Shown piece after piece: positions 2,997 through 36,407 of a stretch of 64,000 nucleotides of DNA. The stretch lies in sequence record OP617745.1. One strand, given 5' to 3'. A model generated the notes under the pieces. That model worked only from the letters and a program-made list of their open reading frames with translations, had not been told where the DNA came from and did no database searches. Each line of letters begins with the position of its first letter. The first letter of the stretch is position 1. The position numbers and the translations under genes were made by a program.

Positions 2997-6339
<3,343 letters not shown>

Positions 6340-6364: not shown

Positions 6365-7657
<1,293 letters not shown>

Positions 7658-7665
7658 ATAAAATC

Positions 7666-7774
7666 TGAACAAAAACTTGTAAGTTGATATAATGAATATT
7701 GTAAGGAGATGTACCTACAAATATAAAAAAGCAGTTAAATAATTTTGAACAAAAACACAAAAATGTTCTATAAT
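7666..7774 (+). promoter_or_regulatory. Two tandem TGAACA-N16/17-TATAAT promoters upstream of the SSB gene
   Basis: 7666-7693 and 7746-7774. Confidence 0.65.
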
Positions 7775-7867
7775 TATTTGGTAGGAAGGAAGAATGAATT
7801 TTCTTCTGATATTAGAGACAAAGAAAATATAAACAAAGATGCAATTAAACATAAAGGACTATAATAT

Positions 7868-8953
7868 ATGAAAACTCTAGCAGAAATTCGTGCAGAACTA
7901 AAAGCTCAAGCTGAAAAACAAGAAGCTCAAAAGAATGGTACATTTGTTGGTGAACGTAAACCAGATTCTTTCTTGGCTTTTTGGAATGTTGGTTTAAATG
8001 AAACTCTAAACCTGCGTTTTCTACCTGATGCAGATGAATCAAATCCATATTTCTGGCGTGAACGTGATATGATTAATCTTACCTTTAATGGTATTAAAGG
8101 TGTTAAACAAGAACGTGTAACTGTTCAAGTGCCATGTAATGAAATGTGGGTACCAAAAAGCTGCCCAGTATTGACTGAAGTTCGCAAATGGTTTGATGAA
8201 GCAAATAAAACCGGAAACGAGGAACTGAAAAAACTAGCATCCTCTTACTGGAAAAAGAAAACCTATCTGATGCAATGTTTTATTGCTCCAGACAGTGCAC
8301 CAGTTAAAGATGATATTGCTCCAGAAAACCCAATTCGTCGAATTCTAGCTAATAAAGATATCTTCGAAAAAGTAAAATCCATTCTACTTAATCCTGGTAT
8401 CAAAGAAATGCCAACTCACTTCGAATATGGTCGTGATTTTGGCATTACTAAAACTAAAAATGGTGGTGGGTATAACAATTATGATAGCTCACAATTTTCT
8501 ATGTCTGAACGTCCACTGAGTGCAGAAGAACGTGCAGCAATTGAAAAATATGGTCTGTATAATCTAAATGATTTTATGCCAAAACAACCAAACGCAGAAG
8601 AACTACAAGCAATCAAAGAAATGTTCGAAGCATCAGTAAAAGGTGAAGCTTATGATCCAGATCGTTGGGCTTTTGCTTACCGTCCAGCAGGTGTTCAAAA
8701 ACCACAAACTACATCTCCTGCTGATGTGATTGCTAGTGCAAATATTCAAACTCCATCTGTAAGTACTGAACCAACAACCCCTGTTGTAGAGAGTACCAGT
8801 ACTGCTGCATCAGACCTGCTAAATCGCCTGAAAACTAACAGTACTGCACCAGTACAGGAACCAGTAGTTGCATCAGCACCAGTTCCTGAAACTACCAAAA
8901 GTACTGCTTCAGCAGCAGATCTAATTGCCCGTCTGAAACAACAACAAAAATAA
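7868..8953 (+). CDS. ssb: Single-stranded DNA-binding protein (T4 gp32-like)
   Basis: LRFLPD, CPV, YWKKKTY, GRDFGITK and NYDSSQF motifs; lies directly upstream of uvsX. Confidence 0.85.
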   Translation: MKTLAEIRAELKAQAEKQEAQKNGTFVGERKPDSFLAFWNVGLNETLNLRFLPDADESNPYFWRERDMINLTFNGIKGVKQERVTVQVPCNEMWVPKSCPVLTEVRKWFDEANKTGNEELKKLASSYWKKKTYLMQCFIAPDSAPVKDDIAPENPIRRILANKDIFEKVKSILLNPGIKEMPTHFEYGRDFGITKTKNGGGYNNYDSSQFSMSERPLSAEERAAIEKYGLYNLNDFMPKQPNAEELQAIKEMFEASVKGEAYDPDRWAFAYRPAGVQKPQTTSPADVIASANIQTPSVSTEPTTPVVESTSTAASDLLNRLKTNSTAPVQEPVVASAPVPETTKSTASAADLIARLKQQQK

Positions 8954-30876: not shown

Positions 30877-31752
30877 ATGATTAACGTTATTAAACGTGAT
30901 GGATCAAAAGAACCACTTGACCTTGATAAAATTCACCAGATTTTATTTTTTGCATGTGAAGGTATTTCTGGTGTGTCTGTGTCTGAAATTGAAATTCGTG
31001 CTAAATTGCAATTTCATGAAGGAATTAAAACTTCTGTAATTCATGATATCCTGATTAAAAGTTCATCAGAGCTTATTTCTGAAGATACTCCAAATTATCA
31101 ATACGTAGCGGGTCGTCTTTTGAATTATAGTATTCGTAAAGAAGTTTATGGTCAGTATGAACCAATTCCTTACGGAGAATATGTAAATAACATGGTTCAA
31201 AAAGGTATATACGATCCTATCATTCTGGAAAAATATAATTCAGCAGAAATCGAAGAACTTGGGAAATACATTAAACACAAGCGTGATGATAAATTTACTT
31301 TTGTTGCGATGAGTCAATGGCAAGGTAAGTATCTGTGTAAAAACCGTGTAACTAAAGAAATTTATGAAACACCACAAATGGCTTATATGACTATCGCTGC
31401 TACGATTTTCTCTGAATATAGTACTGAAATTCGTTTGTCATATGTTAAGAAGTTCTATGATGCTATTAGTACTTTTGATATTAGTTTACCAACTCCGATT
31501 ATGTCCGGTCTTCGCACTAATACACGTCAGTTCTCAAGTTGTGTAGTACTGAATGTTGGCGATAGTCTTGATAGTATTGGTTCCAGTAATCATGCAATCT
31601 TGCGTTATATTTCACGTAAAGCAGGGCTTGGTGTTAATATGGGACGTATTCGTGCAATTGATTCTGCAATTCGTGATGGTGATGCAGTACATACTGGTGT
31701 AGTACCATTCTTATCTGCATTAGCAAAAACAGTTAAAAGCTGTTCACAGGGT
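30877..31752 (+). CDS. nrdA: Ribonucleotide reductase class Ia alpha subunit, exon 1 (ATP cone to SCSQG)
   Basis: VIKRDG ATP cone, PTPIMSG, FSSCV, GLGV and KSCSQG motifs; followed directly by an in-frame TAA that is the start of the intron. Confidence 0.95.
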
Positions 31753-32416
31753 TAATAACATAGCCGTCCATATTAGTAATAATATGGAGTATGATCTCTT
31801 TAATTGCTGGGAAATCCTAAAGCCTAAATATAACTTTAATGAAGTGATGAACAAGTTTAGGATGATACAATGGATAATCAGCAGGTAAGTTTTATGAATC
31901 TCTTATCTATACCAAAACATACAGAATATTATACTGATGGTAATGGAAATATCATCAGTACTAAAAGAAATAAAATAAAAACTTTGACTCCGCATTTACA
32001 TTATGGAAGAAGTAAAAATCCATATATGAGAGTAAAAGTTTCAGGGAAACTATATTTGGTGCATAGATTGGTAGCATCAATATTAGTTGGAAGAGAATTA
32101 TATGAAAATGAATATGTAAATCATATTGATGGAAATACGCAAAATAATTCATTATCTAACTTAGAAATAGTAACTCATATTGAAAATGTTCAACACGCCG
32201 TGGAAAATAAATTATATTGCCAAGGCAACGAATGGTATAAAGCACGAAATTTATAAAAAAACTTCAACGACTAGCTCATAGGAGCGTAGCATCAAGTGAT
32301 GCGAAATGGGAGACACCCTACAAATGAGGGTGAAGATATAGTCTAGACTGTATAGAAATATACAGAAGTTCATAAGAGAACTGGTGGTATCTAACGAATA
32401 CCATTGAATATAGTCG
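31753..32416 (+). mobile_element. Group I intron (IA2-like) in nrdA, 664 nt
   Basis: 5' splice site after U and a terminal G. P AATTGCTGGGAA (31802), Q AATCAGCAG (31876), R TTCAACGACTA (32263), S AAGATATAGTCT (32333). P2 with a GTAA loop, P7.1/P7.2, P8 and P9 with a GAAA loop. Splicing gives SCSQG/GVRGGAAT. Confidence 0.93.
31894..32256 (+). CDS. Intron-encoded HNH homing endonuclease
   Basis: VHRLVA...VNHIDGNTQNNSLSNLEIVTHIENVQHA. It lies between the Q and R elements (P6 loop). The start is 31870 or 31894. Confidence 0.85.
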   Translation: MNLLSIPKHTEYYTDGNGNIISTKRNKIKTLTPHLHYGRSKNPYMRVKVSGKLYLVHRLVASILVGRELYENEYVNHIDGNTQNNSLSNLEIVTHIENVQHAVENKLYCQGNEWYKARNL

Positions 32417-33163
32417 GGTGTAAGAGGCGGTGCAGCAACCGCGTATTTCCCAATGTGGCATTTGGAATTTGAAAATATTGTAGTACTGAAAAATAATAAA
32501 GGAACTGAATTTAACCGAGTAAGACAACTGGACTATTGCTTCCAAATCAATAAGACATTATATCAACGATTGATTGATGGAAAAGACATTACATTCTTTA
32601 GCCCACATGATGTTCCTGATCTATATGATGCATTTTGTGCTAATCAAGAAGAATTTGAACGTCTGTATATTAAGTATGAACTCGATGAAACTATTCGTAG
32701 GAAAACTATGCCAGCGATTGAAGCATTTAGTCATCTAATACAAGAGCGTGCAGAAACTGGCCGCATTTATATTCAGAATATTGATAATGCCAATGAGCAT
32801 GGTTCATTTATTCCAGAAATTGCACCAATTGAGCAAAGTAATCTTTGTTGTGTAACTGGTGAAACATTGGTTACTGTATTACTTGATAATAATCAAATGC
32901 AATTACCGATTATTGAAATATTGGATTTGATTGAATCTGGTAAAAATATAAAAGCAATGTCATACAACACAGAAACTGATACATACTCATTTGAAAAAAT
33001 CACGAATGCAATTAAAACAAAATCAGTAACTGAATATTATGAAATTGAAGATGAAAAAGGTAATATTCTTCGTTGTACTGAAGATCATTTGATTTATACA
33101 AAAAATCGTGGATATGTACGTGCTGACGAATTACAAGAAGATGATGAAATAATTTCATTGTAA
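32417..33163 (+). CDS. nrdA: nrdA exon 2 plus the N-half of split intein 1 (end of polypeptide 1)
   Basis: GVRGGAAT, PMWHLE, GRIYIQN and QSNLC, then the intein N-half and a stop codon. Confidence 0.93.
   Translation, partial: GVRGGAATAYFPMWHLEFENIVVLKNNKGTEFNRVRQLDYCFQINKTLYQRLIDGKDITFFSPHDVPDLYDAFCANQEEFERLYIKYELDETIRRKTMPAIEAFSHLIQERAETGRIYIQNIDNANEHGSFIPEIAPIEQSNLCCVTGETLVTVLLDNNQMQLPIIEILDLIESGKNIKAMSYNTETDTYSFEKITNAIKTKSVTEYYEIEDEKGNILRCTEDHLIYTKNRGYVRADELQEDDEIISL
32849..33160 (+). mobile_element. Split intein 1, N-half (104 aa)
   Basis: Block A CVTGETLV and block B LRCTEDHLIYT, then GYVRADELQEDD and a stop; no C-terminal HN in this frame. Confidence 0.9.
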
Positions 33164-33168
33164 TCATA

Positions 33169-33209
33169 GGTAGTGTGATTTCTAATAAATAACATGAAAT
33201 CACACTACC
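33169..33209 (+). promoter_or_regulatory. 14-bp hairpin with TAAATA in the loop, upstream of the GIY-YIG gene
   Basis: GGTAGTGTGATTTC-TAATAAATAACAT-GAAATCACACTACC. Confidence 0.7.
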
Positions 33210-33224
33210 ATTGAGACAACAATA

Positions 33225-33938
33225 ATGAAACAATACGAAGTATATTGTCATACTAATACATTAAACAATAAATCATATATTGGTTATACATCACAGAGTA
33301 CGTTGACGCGTCTACAAAAGCATATTTTAAATGCTAATTATGGCATACAAAGTCATTTTTACCGTGCAATAAGAAAATATGGCATTGAAGTATTCAGTAC
33401 TAAAATATTGTTTAAAACAGATATTTTAGAAGAAGCACTTGAAATGGAAAAATATTATATTAAAGAATATGATTCTATTGTAAATGGATATAATATGACT
33501 TCTGGTGGAACTGGTGGAAATACCCAAATAGGTTTTGATGATGAAAAAATGGAACAATATTTAAATGATTTGTCAAACAGAACTTCATCAGAAAAGAATC
33601 CAAATCATTCAGGTAAAACAGATGATGAAATTGTTGATTTTTATTATAATTTATATATGGAAAATATGAACTGGCTTAGTAGACCTTTTATGCTTAAAGC
33701 AAAAGAAAATGGAATACCACAATCATTTTCTAAATGTAGATTTAATGGTTTAGGGTGGACTGAATTACGAAAACGAATTTTGGAAAAAGTTCAAATAACT
33801 AATCCAGAAATTAAAGAAATAAAATATATTAGAACGAAAGAACATATTGAAAAATTATCAGGTACTCAATTTAAAAAAGGAATTAAGTGGAATGAGCAAC
33901 CTCAAAATAAGAAAAGTAAAGGTGGAAACACCAATTGA
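33225..33938 (+). CDS. Free-standing GIY-YIG homing endonuclease inside split intein 1
   Basis: EVYCHTN...YIGYT...RLQKH...EKYYI...GYNMTSGG. Confidence 0.9.
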   Translation: MKQYEVYCHTNTLNNKSYIGYTSQSTLTRLQKHILNANYGIQSHFYRAIRKYGIEVFSTKILFKTDILEEALEMEKYYIKEYDSIVNGYNMTSGGTGGNTQIGFDDEKMEQYLNDLSNRTSSEKNPNHSGKTDDEIVDFYYNLYMENMNWLSRPFMLKAKENGIPQSFSKCRFNGLGWTELRKRILEKVQITNPEIKEIKYIRTKEHIEKLSGTQFKKGIKWNEQPQNKKSKGGNTN

Positions 33939-34002
33939 TGTTTATGATATCACGGTAGAAAATAATCATAATTTCTTCGCAGATGAAATTTTAGTTCATA
34001 AC
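33892..34002 (+). mobile_element. Split intein 1, C-half (37 aa)
   Basis: Block F VYDITVENNHNFFA and block G ILVHN, with Cys at +1. Confidence 0.92.
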
Positions 34003-34917
34003 TGTGAGATTGACTTACCAAGTTCTCCATTTGAAGATATTAATAATGGTGATGGTCTTATTAGTCTATGTACTTTGAGTGCTATTAACTGGGGTAATTT
34101 TGACAAACCCGAAGATATGGAAGAAGCGTGTGATTTGGCCGTTCGTGCATTAGATGCTATTCTTGATTATCAGGATTATCCAGTTGTTCACGCAGAACGA
34201 GCTACAAAGCTCTATAGGCCGCTTGGTGTTGGTATCATGAGTTTGGCTTACTTCCTTGCTAAACGTGGTTTAAAATACGATACAAACGCATTGAGCACTA
34301 TTAACGAATGGTCAGAAGCGTGGTCTTATTATTTGATTAAAGCATCGGTGAATCTTGCCAAAGAAAAAGGACGCTGTGATGGATTTAATAATACCAAGTA
34401 CTCACAAGGTTTATTCCCTCATGATACTTATAAATCAGATTCATATATTAATGAAGTTGCCCCGTATGAACTAAAACAAGATTGGGATGCACTACGTGAA
34501 GAAATGGTGGAGCATGGTATTCGAAATGCAACTCTACATGCTATTATGCCAGGCGAATGCCAATCGTGGGACAATAAACTAAACACAGTAGAATATGGAA
34601 ATATTGATTTTCATGAATTATGCGAAAAATATGGAATTAATTATGAAGATGTAGAACGTAATGGTATTCCAGATTCATATAATTTAGCACAACCATTAAA
34701 GATTAATACTGCTAATGGTGAAAAAGAAGCGACTCGACTTTATTATAATGGAAACTATGAAATTTATAAATTAACTTTTGATGATGGTAATGAATATTCA
34801 TTTACTGGTAATCATCAACTAAAAGTTATTGAAGATGGTGTTGAATTCTGGTGCAGAGTTGATATGTTAACAGAAAATATGGAAGTTGTTAATATAAATG
34901 AAAAGAATAAAGGATGA
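33892..34917 (+). CDS. nrdA: nrdA polypeptide 2: IntC1 - NrdA middle (185 aa) - IntN2
   Basis: MSNLKIRK...VYDITV...LVHN/CEIDLP, SLCTLSAINWG, RPLGVG, NATLHAIMPGE/CQSWD. The ATG at 33892 follows an AAGGA/GTGGA RBS. Confidence 0.92.
   Translation: MSNLKIRKVKVETPIDVYDITVENNHNFFADEILVHNCEIDLPSSPFEDINNGDGLISLCTLSAINWGNFDKPEDMEEACDLAVRALDAILDYQDYPVVHAERATKLYRPLGVGIMSLAYFLAKRGLKYDTNALSTINEWSEAWSYYLIKASVNLAKEKGRCDGFNNTKYSQGLFPHDTYKSDSYINEVAPYELKQDWDALREEMVEHGIRNATLHAIMPGECQSWDNKLNTVEYGNIDFHELCEKYGINYEDVERNGIPDSYNLAQPLKINTANGEKEATRLYYNGNYEIYKLTFDDGNEYSFTGNHQLKVIEDGVEFWCRVDMLTENMEVVNINEKNKG
34558..34914 (+). mobile_element. Split intein 2, N-half (119 aa)
   Basis: Begins CQSWDNKL after MPGE; block B SFTGNHQLKV, then WCRVDML and a stop. 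Confidence 0.88.
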
Positions 34918-35869
34918 ATTAAAATGTAATCAATATAATAGCCAAGAATTGTACTTGGCTATATTTGAATATTATAAGAATTTAAAAAATAAGCAAAGTA
35001 AAAAATTTAGAAAATATGTAGAAGAATCTAGATTATATAATATTGAATCTATGAAAAAGTTCTTTGCACTACAGGGTCATGGTATTGCTTATAAACCGGA
35101 ATATTATATGTATCTTCATTGTGTTGATGAAAAACAAGCTAATGAATATTTGAACATAATGATGGAAAATAAAAAAACCTCTAAAGAAAATTTTATTAAA
35201 AAGCATGGCATGGAAAAAGGTACATTATTGTGGAATGAATTTAAGAATAAAACATTAAATAAAACTCCAACTCGTGGAACTATGTATTTTACGGGTAATA
35301 ACGAACTTGATAAAATGCTATCATCATTATATAGAAAGATAACAAATAAAAGGTGTATAGAATATTATTTACACAATTATGATATTTCATATGAAAAAGC
35401 ATTAGAGTTGCAATTAAATTATCAAAAAGAAAATTCTGGTGTATTTGGAGAATATTATGAACTTAGAGATTTATCACATAAACCTAAATTTGATCATACG
35501 TTTGAAGTTACACAAGAATGCATACGTAAACGCCAAATATCAAAAAATAAACTTGGGAAATGTGTACATCCTGATGATAAAAAAGAATGGGAAAAATATA
35601 GAAATAAAGTATGTTCGTTAACAAGAAAAGAAATTTATATTTCTGAATTAGAAAATTATGATTTATATATAAAAAACCCAAACGAATGGCATCTGGATCA
35701 TATTGTATCTAAAATACATGGATTTTTAAACTCGGTACCACCGGAAATAATTGCTTCTATTCATAATTTACAGATTATTCCAGCTAAAGAGAATATAGCA
35801 AAAAACTATAGAAGTAATATGGACATTAATGATTTATTAAGGATATATAATGAAAATCGTAAAAATTGA
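34898..35869 (+). CDS. Free-standing HNH homing endonuclease inside split intein 2
   Basis: C-terminal HLDHIVS...HNLQIIPAKENIAKN; overlaps both flanking nrdA pieces by 20 nt. Confidence 0.8.
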   Translation: MKRIKDELKCNQYNSQELYLAIFEYYKNLKNKQSKKFRKYVEESRLYNIESMKKFFALQGHGIAYKPEYYMYLHCVDEKQANEYLNIMMENKKTSKENFIKKHGMEKGTLLWNEFKNKTLNKTPTRGTMYFTGNNELDKMLSSLYRKITNKRCIEYYLHNYDISYEKALELQLNYQKENSGVFGEYYELRDLSHKPKFDHTFEVTQECIRKRQISKNKLGKCVHPDDKKEWEKYRNKVCSLTRKEIYISELENYDLYIKNPNEWHLDHIVSKIHGFLNSVPPEIIASIHNLQIIPAKENIAKNYRSNMDINDLLRIYNENRKN

Positions 35870-35954
35870 AAAAAATGGAATAAAACCAACTTGGGATATT
35901 GAAGTCCCTGATGGAAATGAATATGTTCTTCCAAATGGTATTGTATCTCATAAT
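35850..35954 (+). mobile_element. Split intein 2, C-half (35 aa)
   Basis: Block F TWDIEVP and block G IVSHN, with Thr at +1. Confidence 0.92.
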
Positions 35955-36407
35955 ACATCATCACAAATTAGTAATAGTACTGCTGGTATTGAAAAGATTC
36001 GTTCTCTTGTAACAGTAAAAACTTCTAAAGATGGTGTTCTTAAACAAGTTGTACCTGAAATTTCAAAATTAAAGAACAAATATGACCTACTATGGGAACA
36101 ATCTGATAATATTGGTTATCTTCAGGTGTGTGGTGTTATGCAGAAATATATGGATCAAGGTATAAGTACTAATACGAGTTATAATCCTGAAAAGTTCCAA
36201 GATGGAAAAGTGCCAATGTCAGTACTGTTAACAGAACTCCTAATGGCTTATAAACTTAACGCGAAACAACTTTATTATCATAACGTGTTGGATAATGCTT
36301 CTGAAGTTGATATTGACAAATATATGGAAGAAAAAAATAAATTAACAAAAAATGATATTGTTTTGCCTGAGCTACCAGAAGATGATTGTGAGAGTTGTAA
36401 ATTGTAA
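35850..36407 (+). CDS. nrdA: nrdA polypeptide 3: IntC2 - NrdA C-terminus (150 aa)
   Basis: MKIVKIEK...TWDIEV...IVSHN/TSSQISNST, DQGISTN, LYY and the terminal CESCKL. Confidence 0.93.
   Translation: MKIVKIEKNGIKPTWDIEVPDGNEYVLPNGIVSHNTSSQISNSTAGIEKIRSLVTVKTSKDGVLKQVVPEISKLKNKYDLLWEQSDNIGYLQVCGVMQKYMDQGISTNTSYNPEKFQDGKVPMSVLLTELLMAYKLNAKQLYYHNVLDNASEVDIDKYMEEKNKLTKNDIVLPELPEDDCESCKL

Follow-up and report, generated by a model that had tools for sequence, protein, structure and literature searches.

Klebsiella phage KP13-7 is a RaK2-like jumbo phage (genus Alcyoneusvirus). In its annotation, nrdA appears as four protein pieces with three small open reading frames (ORFs) between them, which raises the question of what interrupted this gene and how one NrdA protein could still be made from it. 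We analysed a window of 64,000 nucleotides (nt), nt 1-64000 of the KP13-7 genome (OP617745.1), with the interruption at 34558-35954 as our main subject. This stretch is very probably one composite selfish element, a mini-intein broken at its endonuclease loop by a free-standing gene that resembles those of homing endonucleases. The cassette is a real, recently acquired example of the fractured-gene arrangement that has been known since 2009.

An uninterrupted nrdA of 771 amino acids (aa) is present in phages RaK2, K64-1, Muenster and RCIP0023 and in one further record, and blastn of KP13-7 against the intact RaK2 gene delimited three insertions (Table 1). The third coincides to the nucleotide with the segment in which a preliminary description of this DNA had placed a split intein, the second in the gene (intein 2), at an MPGE/TSS site with a nuclease gene between its halves, and that arrangement is supported here. 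Measured against RaK2 and five other Alcyoneusvirus genomes in which nrdA is intact, this insertion is exact. RaK2 NrdA reads NMPGE/TSSQISN without a break. In KP13-7, IMPGE is followed by an N-terminal intein half (IntN2) that begins with Cys and ends at a stop codon, by an ORF, and by a C-terminal half (IntC2) that runs from Met to SHN, after which TSSQISN resumes. The CQSWDNKL start of IntN2, the SHN end of IntC2 with the Thr codon of TSSQ directly after it, and the 20-nt overlaps of the middle ORF with both halves (34898-34917 with IntN2 and 35850-35869 with IntC2) are all as first described. The last ~5 residues and the stop codon of IntN2 lie inside the first of these overlaps.

Table 1 Features of the interrupted nrdA region of KP13-7, in window coordinates.
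Feature	Position (strand)	Remarks
Insertion 1	31752-32416	~665 nt; contains an HNH_3 ORF; delimited by blastn against RaK2
Insertion 2, intein 1 cassette	~32849-34005	contains a GIY-YIG ORF; delimited by blastn against RaK2
NrdA extein between inteins 1 and 2	34003-34557 (+)	ends ...IMPGE; Pfam Ribonuc_red_lgC 8e-41; collinear with RaK2 NrdA 437-624
Co-conversion tract upstream of the insertion point	34406-34554 (+)	~150 bp; from differences between phiKp_21 and RaK2
Insertion 3, intein 2 cassette	34558-35954	exactly 1397 nt; delimited by blastn against RaK2
IntN2, N-half of split intein	34558-34914 (+), stop 34915-34917	119 aa; Cys1; block B TGNH at residues 83-86
Free-standing 323-aa ORF, putative homing endonuclease	34898-35869 (+)	between the intein halves
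RNA hairpin, 9 bp	34938-34962 (+)	40 nt into the nuclease ORF, 21 nt past the IntN2 stop
C-terminal nuclease-like domain	35567-35866 (+)	motif ...WHLDHIVS...GF.N..PPE...NLQIIP..EN..K
Shine-Dalgarno-like AAGGA	35839-35843 (+)	6 nt before the IntC2 ATG, within the 3' end of the nuclease ORF; read from the sequence
IntC2, C-half of split intein	35850-35954 (+)	35 aa; WDIEV (block F), ...IVSHN (block G); phrog_18112 at 1e-6
C-extein, NrdA C-terminal 150 aa	35955-36407 (+)	Thr+1 first (TSSQISNSTAG...); collinear with RaK2 NrdA 625-771; Pfam Ribonuc_red_lgC

The two halves carry the residues of a class 1 intein. The Cys codon at 34558-34560, directly after MPGE, would provide the first nucleophile; the block B Thr-x-x-His motif is TGNH in IntN2 and T/S-x-N-H in 10/10 aligned family members; and IVSHN at the end of IntC2 is followed by Thr at 35955. 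This set of splicing residues is complete in the KP13-7 halves and is retained in relatives at 30-60% identity. Up to E 1 the family profile matched 52 PDB chains, almost all of them inteins or HINT domains (best 4.6e-7), and PF14890 matched 8/8 family members at E ≤ 1 (best 3e-9). By tblastn, relatives ~32% identical to IntN2 were found in the NrdA of Campylobacter phages, with E down to 4e-13; those of CP220 and PC14 are contiguous mini-inteins of 146-153 aa in the same NrdA loop. A search for related loci with IntN2 alone gave only chance matches in a high-GC contig (L009/L010), which were discarded.

The fold was examined on a close homologue. A metagenomic Alcyoneus-like contig, L015, encodes a contiguous 151-aa version of the intein (5661-6113 of the contig) that is 59% identical to IntN2 and 71% to IntC2, and its AlphaFold2 model had a predicted local distance difference test score (pLDDT) of 94.8 and a predicted template modelling score of 0.86. 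Foldseek found 64 matches to this model at E ≤ 1e-3, and all the matches listed are inteins. In VIA-align it scored Z 18.9 to the TvoVMA intein over 147/151 residues, and 86 chains reached Z ≥ 8, the 50 listed being inteins or other HINT domains. As modelled on its contiguous relative, the intein 2 family has the HINT fold. Judged by its sequence, intein 2 is a class 1 mini-intein of a family that is allelic at the NrdA MPGE/TSS loop, and it is predicted to splice.

Aligned to the L015 intein, IntN2 corresponds to residues 1-118 and IntC2 to residues 118-151, so the break lies in the loop in which endonucleases are usually inserted, exactly where contiguous family members carry a short linker. 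The halves are encoded on separate ORFs of the same strand, N-half first, and the 3' end of the putative nuclease ORF that stands between them overlaps the start of IntC2. The net charge is +3 over the first 14 residues of IntC2 and -3 over the tail of IntN2, opposite charges that fit the electrostatic pairing reported for NrdA-2, NrdJ-1 and IMPDH-1 (PMC2677866). The middle NrdA polypeptide (ORF 33847/33892-34917) begins with IntC1 and ends with IntN2, and the two intein pairs would therefore have to be orthogonal in vivo; IntN2 and IntN1, like IntC2 and IntC1, are 25-26% identical.

The N-half had been called atypical in the preliminary description, with an extra segment of about 35 aa after block A, and neither part of that claim survived. 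The segment is kept in all relatives in the family alignments, and IntN2 is a normal family member that fits inteins of the TvoVMA, RadA and GyrA type end to end. In the L015 model the segment consists of the usual helix (18-24), one additional short helix (29-35) and a long strand. VIA-align aligned TvoVMA-, RadA- and GyrA-type inteins over 138-147/151 residues with the segment included (Z 17.8-18.9), and the compact gp41-1 and Npu DnaE inteins over just 123-128 residues. The difference between the 147/151 residues aligned on TvoVMA and the 123-128 aligned on these two puts the excess over such highly compact inteins at ~14-20 aa and not 35, and the segment is not unusual among inteins.

The distribution of the cassette among sister phages indicates that it has moved recently. 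Phage phiKp_21 has the intein 2 cassette only, without the presumed intron at insertion 1 and without intein 1, and its copy is identical to that of KP13-7 at 1396/1397 positions. When phiKp_21 is compared to RaK2 over the 552-nt extein at 34006-34557, 21 substitutions fall in the tract 34406-34554 just upstream of the insertion point and one falls elsewhere; over this tract KP13-7 and phiKp_21 are identical. The two cassette-bearing phages differ at 1 position over 34396-36130, as against 36/1837 (~2%) in the remaining extein DNA of the comparison (Fisher p 2.7e-8, with the 1397-nt element itself counted with 1 difference). This pattern is the mark that recent homing leaves when the flank is co-converted, the donor here being ~86% identical in the tract. 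A precise presence/absence polymorphism is combined with co-conversion of the flank, as in a homing element. The gain relative to RaK2 is precisely 1397 nt, which shows that the IntN-nuclease-IntC unit was already split when it entered an empty site as a whole. The L015 contig was rejected as the donor, as it is just ~70% identical in DNA.

A second co-conversion tract, at 34008-34395 just downstream of the intein 1 site, contains 38 differences between KP13-7 and phiKp_21 and belongs to a separate acquisition of intein 1. Near-identical copies of the cassette were found in wastewater and surface metagenomes from ~10 studies, and both phiKp_21 and a wastewater contig of 126 kb have the same nrdA arrangement. 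Contigs with the cassette have a depth of ~9 in wastewater run X7, versus ~30-40 for the extein contigs, which is consistent with mixed alleles; loose ends in runs X7 and X19 show the junction without intein 1.

The architecture recurs well beyond these phages. Among the top 120 clusters that match the 185-aa C-terminal piece, 36 are free-standing genes made of a leader of 34-36 aa ending in SHN and the C-terminus of NrdA; all 36 leaders end in SHN, followed at +1 by Thr (33 leaders) or Ser (3 leaders). In the loci examined (L008, L013, L014, L017-L020, the P0007 contig and Campylobacter phage CP21), IntN is placed after MP(S/A/G)E or one residue later. What lies between the halves varies. A homologue of the KP13-7 323-aa ORF is found in L008, L017 (44% identity), L019 and L020, and a 101-aa nuclease-only version in L018. 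P0007 has the same N-terminal module with a Vsr/DUF559-type nuclease instead, L013 an unrelated 176-aa ORF, and L014 a spacer of 187 nt with no ORF. The nuclease ORF overlaps the start of IntC by 20 nt in KP13-7, L017, L019 and L020, by 14 nt in L018 and by 11 nt in L008. The insertion follows the Glu-equivalent residue (+1 Thr) in KP13-7, PC14 and most metagenomic copies; CP220/CP21, L008 and P0090 have it in the same loop of NrdA but one residue further on (+1 Ser).

The two Campylobacter phages CP220 and CP21 bear on the breaking of the intein itself. CP21 (L005, 3315-4432) has an insert of 1118 nt in place of 25 nt of the contiguous intein of CP220 (L004, 3315-3339), and the flanks are 97.5% identical. 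The intervening region of CP21 gives a collinear match to the nuclease profile that is spread over four frames and therefore reads as a degenerate copy of the nuclease. At the sequence level, CP220 and CP21 look like a direct before/after pair for the fracture of an intein by an endonuclease gene. The intein tree places CP21 with CP220 (support 100/100) and KP13-7 with the contiguous intein of L015 (88/91); because split members are paired with contiguous ones, the presence of the nuclease toggles among close inteins.

These pairings, together with the recurrent loci, imply that the cassette was already split when it reached the Alcyoneusvirus lineage. The fracture was not an event in KP13-7, as L008, L017, L019, L020 and CP21 have this nuclease family placed identically, within one loop of one intein family. 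The proposal that intein 2 was fractured independently is therefore accepted in one sense and not in another. Independence from intein 1 stands: phiKp_21 has cassette 2 only, the two inteins are as dissimilar as stated above, and their nucleases are unrelated (GIY-YIG in intein 1, a DH..N..N domain in intein 2), a difference in endonuclease family from which independence had first been proposed. A fracture within KP13-7 does not stand, as the unit arrived already split. Inteins 1 and 2 were fractured and acquired independently.

The 323-aa ORF consists of an N-terminal helical module of ~220 aa, putatively DNA binding, and a C-terminal nuclease-like domain. In PHROGs it matched phrog_5104 (annotated as unknown function) at 2e-14 and phrog_1035 (endonuclease VII) at 2.6e-4. 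Residues D44, H45, S48, G52, N67, L68, N76 and K79 of the domain are invariant across 40 relatives. The AlphaFold2 model of the ORF has a pLDDT of ~84-94 over residues ~230-320, with a strand-strand-helix core on which the invariant residues are laid out like the catalytic residues of HNH nucleases: D267-H268 on strand 264-268, N290 at the start of strand 291-295, and N299 on helix 296-302. A profile search with the domain found 5006 clusters (50% level) at E ≤ 1e-3. In the best 150 hits listed it is C-terminal, in proteins of 78-455 aa, and the N-termini of its relatives often carry NUMOD3 or helix-turn-helix modules. Relatives in T4-like phages lie between the tail sheath and tail tube genes, and in Acinetobacter phage 133 (L022, 369-2446) a homologue, Acj133p227, lies between the annotated rnlA-A and rnlA-B, which it overlaps by 35 nt and 14 nt. 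Such placements are typical of free-standing homing endonucleases. T4 RnlA has ~374 aa; the two Acj133 rnlA pieces together exceed this length by ~60 aa, probably not enough to accommodate a split intein.

Several results weigh against an intein broken by a nuclease gene. IntN2 by itself had no Pfam match at default thresholds nor at E ≤ 0.1, and TIGR01445 matched it at E 0.007, under its cut-off. The 323-aa ORF had no match in Pfam or NCBIfam, the Pfam HNH models (PF01844, PF13392 and related) included; among its relatives a Pfam HNH match was seen in one of the 7-10 scanned per set, at E 0.12, and in 0/40 domain relatives at E ≤ 0.1. Searches of PDB sequences with three nuclease-family profiles returned nothing relevant. 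The structural matches of the domain are weak, all of them below significance or the confidence range of the tool: the best was the Gme HNH nicking endonuclease at Z 4.7, followed by Cas9 HNH, GVE2 HNH, BrxU and Vvn at Z 2.9-3.5, with Foldseek E values of 0.68 or worse. One wastewater contig (run X7, depth 9) has a 1-nt deletion in the nuclease ORF at window position 35183, so that some cassette copies may be decaying, unless the missing base is an error of assembly. As for expression, the contigs of one RNA library cover parts of the nuclease ORF and the IntC junction, and these may be DNA carry-over.

The missing curated profile match and the weakness of the structural matches leave some room for the view that the 323-aa ORF is a DNA-binding or regulatory passenger and no nuclease, and that the cassette spread by general recombination only. 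We regard this as improbable. The invariant DH..N..N..K residues lie on a confidently modelled strand-strand-helix core, and every structural match, albeit weak, is to an HNH or beta-beta-alpha-Me nuclease. The modules found in its relatives are typical of homing endonucleases, and the paralogue at the same position in P0007 has a Vsr/DUF559-type nuclease in the place of this domain. The family also splits rnlA in phage Acj133, and presence/absence together with co-conversion is the signature of homing. Because of the modelled position of the invariant residues and the identity of all the weak matches, the domain is probably HNH-like, though not a member of the Pfam HNH families. The name HNH that it had been given rests on the invariant DH...N...N..K motif and on these weak structural matches, and no curated profile confirms it.

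With the ORF taken as a probable nuclease, the composite element would work as follows. The nrdA region would be expressed as separate polypeptides, and IntN2, which closes the middle NrdA chain, would associate with IntC2 at the start of the last one. Trans-splicing through Cys1, the TGNH block, the terminal Asn and Thr+1 would join ...MPGE to TSSQ... and rebuild the conserved NrdA loop. The 323-aa protein, by means of its helical DNA-binding part and its HNH-like nuclease, would cut the cassette-free nrdA of co-infecting phages, its predicted target, and repair would copy the entire IntN-nuclease-IntC unit plus flanking extein DNA. The nuclease gene would in turn serve the halves that it separates: its 3' end may provide the ribosome-binding site and the ATG of IntC2, and its 5' end the tail and stop codon of IntN2.

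In one alternative the halves splice no longer, and their interaction tails hold two NrdA chains together non-covalently, as in NrdA-a/NrdA-b of phage Aeh1, in which a split NrdA works without splicing and the tails are essential (PMC3045599). The terminal HN and Thr/Ser+1 are nevertheless kept in 36/36 IntC leaders, and Cys1 and TxxH in 10/10 IntN examined, at 30-60% identity. Conservation of these residues despite such divergence is a pattern expected only under selection on the splicing chemistry, and it makes the loss of splicing very unlikely. It is also very unlikely that the KP13-7 nrdA, in four pieces and full of selfish elements, is decaying and non-functional while the phage uses the ribonucleotide reductase of its host. 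Its extein segments are all intact, keep their order and their collinearity with RaK2 NrdA, and contain no frameshift or stop. Where they depart from RaK2 in the tracts, most of the changes (42/60) fall on third codon positions, and the arrangement recurs in phiKp_21 and the 126-kb wastewater contig. We retain the reading of a fractured intein, with splicing and DNA cleavage as its predicted activities.

The cassette is closest in plan to the fractured genes of Dassa et al. 2009 (PMC2677866), e.g. NrdA-2, NrdJ-1 and gp41-1, in which a free-standing endonuclease gene separates the two parts of a split intein. The order N-extein-IntN, endonuclease ORF, IntC-C-extein on a single strand is the same, as are the break at the endonuclease loop, the overlap of the endonuclease 3' end with the IntC start (6-69 bp there, 20 nt in KP13-7) and the host, a phage-type gene of nucleotide metabolism. 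The nucleases reported there were GIY-YIG and Vsr-like only, and fracture of genes by HNH types was a prediction (PMC2677866). The NrdA site of that study is the thiyl-radical cysteine, which is the KP13-7 intein 1 site, and not the MPxE/TSS loop. Its loci were metagenomic fragments, whereas KP13-7 is cultured and has empty and intermediate alleles in sequenced sister phages.

Mini-inteins in the NrdA of Campylobacter phages CP220, PC14/NCTC12673 and IBB_35 were already noted (PMC3653736, PMC3322345). They belong to the same family as intein 2 and share the supposedly extra helix segment; that of PC14 is at the same loop, APTA/TSG, and that of CP220 is inserted one residue later, past the Thr-equivalent, with Ser at +1. 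Unlike the KP13-7 halves, the inteins of CP220 and PC14 are contiguous, and CP21 is a split derivative with a degenerate copy of the KP13-7 nuclease family. In phage Aeh1, nrdA is split by the HNH gene mobE (Friedrich 2007; Crona 2010, PMC3045599), so there too a free-standing HNH-type gene divides nrdA into separately translated chains in one operon. The Aeh1 gene has no intein, however, and is split in another place, its function being restored by non-covalent tails. The PolB of phage MIJ3, also a jumbo phage, is a known split-intein case with an intervening ORF annotated as an HNH homing endonuclease; its host gene and intein family differ, the first residue is Ser, and evidence from empty alleles or co-conversion is unreported. 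The TvoVMA, Pho RadA and Mxe GyrA mini-inteins (PDB 4o1s, 4e2t, 1am2) match the fold over near full length at 17-20% sequence identity, but they are contiguous and in other host proteins. A 2025 preprint describes out-of-frame endonuclease-VII-like genes within actinophage inteins. Our literature search, with most subscription journals outside its reach, turned up no earlier description of the KP13-7/phiKp_21 cassette or this nuclease family, nor of any split intein at the MPxE/TSS loop.

Further observations concern the cassette DNA and the other two insertions. The hairpin inside the nuclease ORF (Table 1) has a minimum free energy of -13.6 kcal/mol (z -3.8 versus shuffles). The two 20-nt overlaps have 14/20 bases in common (P ~8e-4 versus random 20-mers of the cassette); a target-site duplication was considered and rejected, because the fixed ATG and TGA account for 6 of the 14 shared bases and Met-Lys opens both genes. 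Insertion 1 splits nrdA between ...SCSQG and GVRGGAAT... and contains a 128-aa HNH_3 ORF at 31870-32256 (Pfam 6e-12). A group I intron is presumed here, but Rfam at E ≤ 0.1 gave no group I intron model and nothing in the intein 2 cassette. At the equivalent site L015 has a shorter insert (~270 nt) from which the ORF is absent. L015 also has a split intein 1, with just a 60-nt spacer and no nuclease gene, and its nrdB is likewise split into two ORFs ~960 nt apart (6673-8695). The acquisition of intein 1 changed the +1 residue from Gln in RaK2 to Cys. A strong palindromic hairpin at 33152-33225, between the stop codon of IntN1 and the start codon of the GIY-YIG ORF, is reminiscent of those that the 2009 paper shows upstream of endonuclease genes; the sole Rfam hits, to mir-23 on both strands of this hairpin, were judged spurious. 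A scan for sigma-70 promoters gave 45 sites versus 41.5 expected from shuffles, i.e. no better than shuffles.

Tentatively, and as a joint reading that may well not hold in all its parts, we suggest a wider picture. The nuclease may be a specialist of the intein 2 family that homes into the loops of mini-inteins lacking an endonuclease gene and into empty nrdA. Fracture would be recurrent, as from CP220 to CP21 and as where the tree joins KP13-7 to a contiguous relative. On this view the nuclease would be one of a very large clade of phage nucleases, so far undescribed, with the DH..N..N motif (the 5006 clusters, missed by Pfam HNH). This clade would characteristically fracture genes, rnlA of Acj133 among them, and give the downstream piece its start codon via a conserved short overlap.

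The analysis gives a natural split intein and its putative homing nuclease a cultured phage as host. Each state of the gene, from empty through single-cassette to fully loaded, is represented among cultured phages, and as the empty alleles (RaK2, K64-1, Muenster) and the single-cassette phiKp_21 are sequenced, homing, co-conversion and trans-splicing can be tested by phage crosses and co-expression. Orthogonal intein pairs within one enzyme, of which the intein 2 pair is of the Cys1/Thr+1 type, would be of practical interest for protein ligation. The nuclease domain represents a large phage family without a curated profile. Finally, the CP220/CP21 pair would picture directly the intein-breaking step that the 2009 model of fractured genes inferred.

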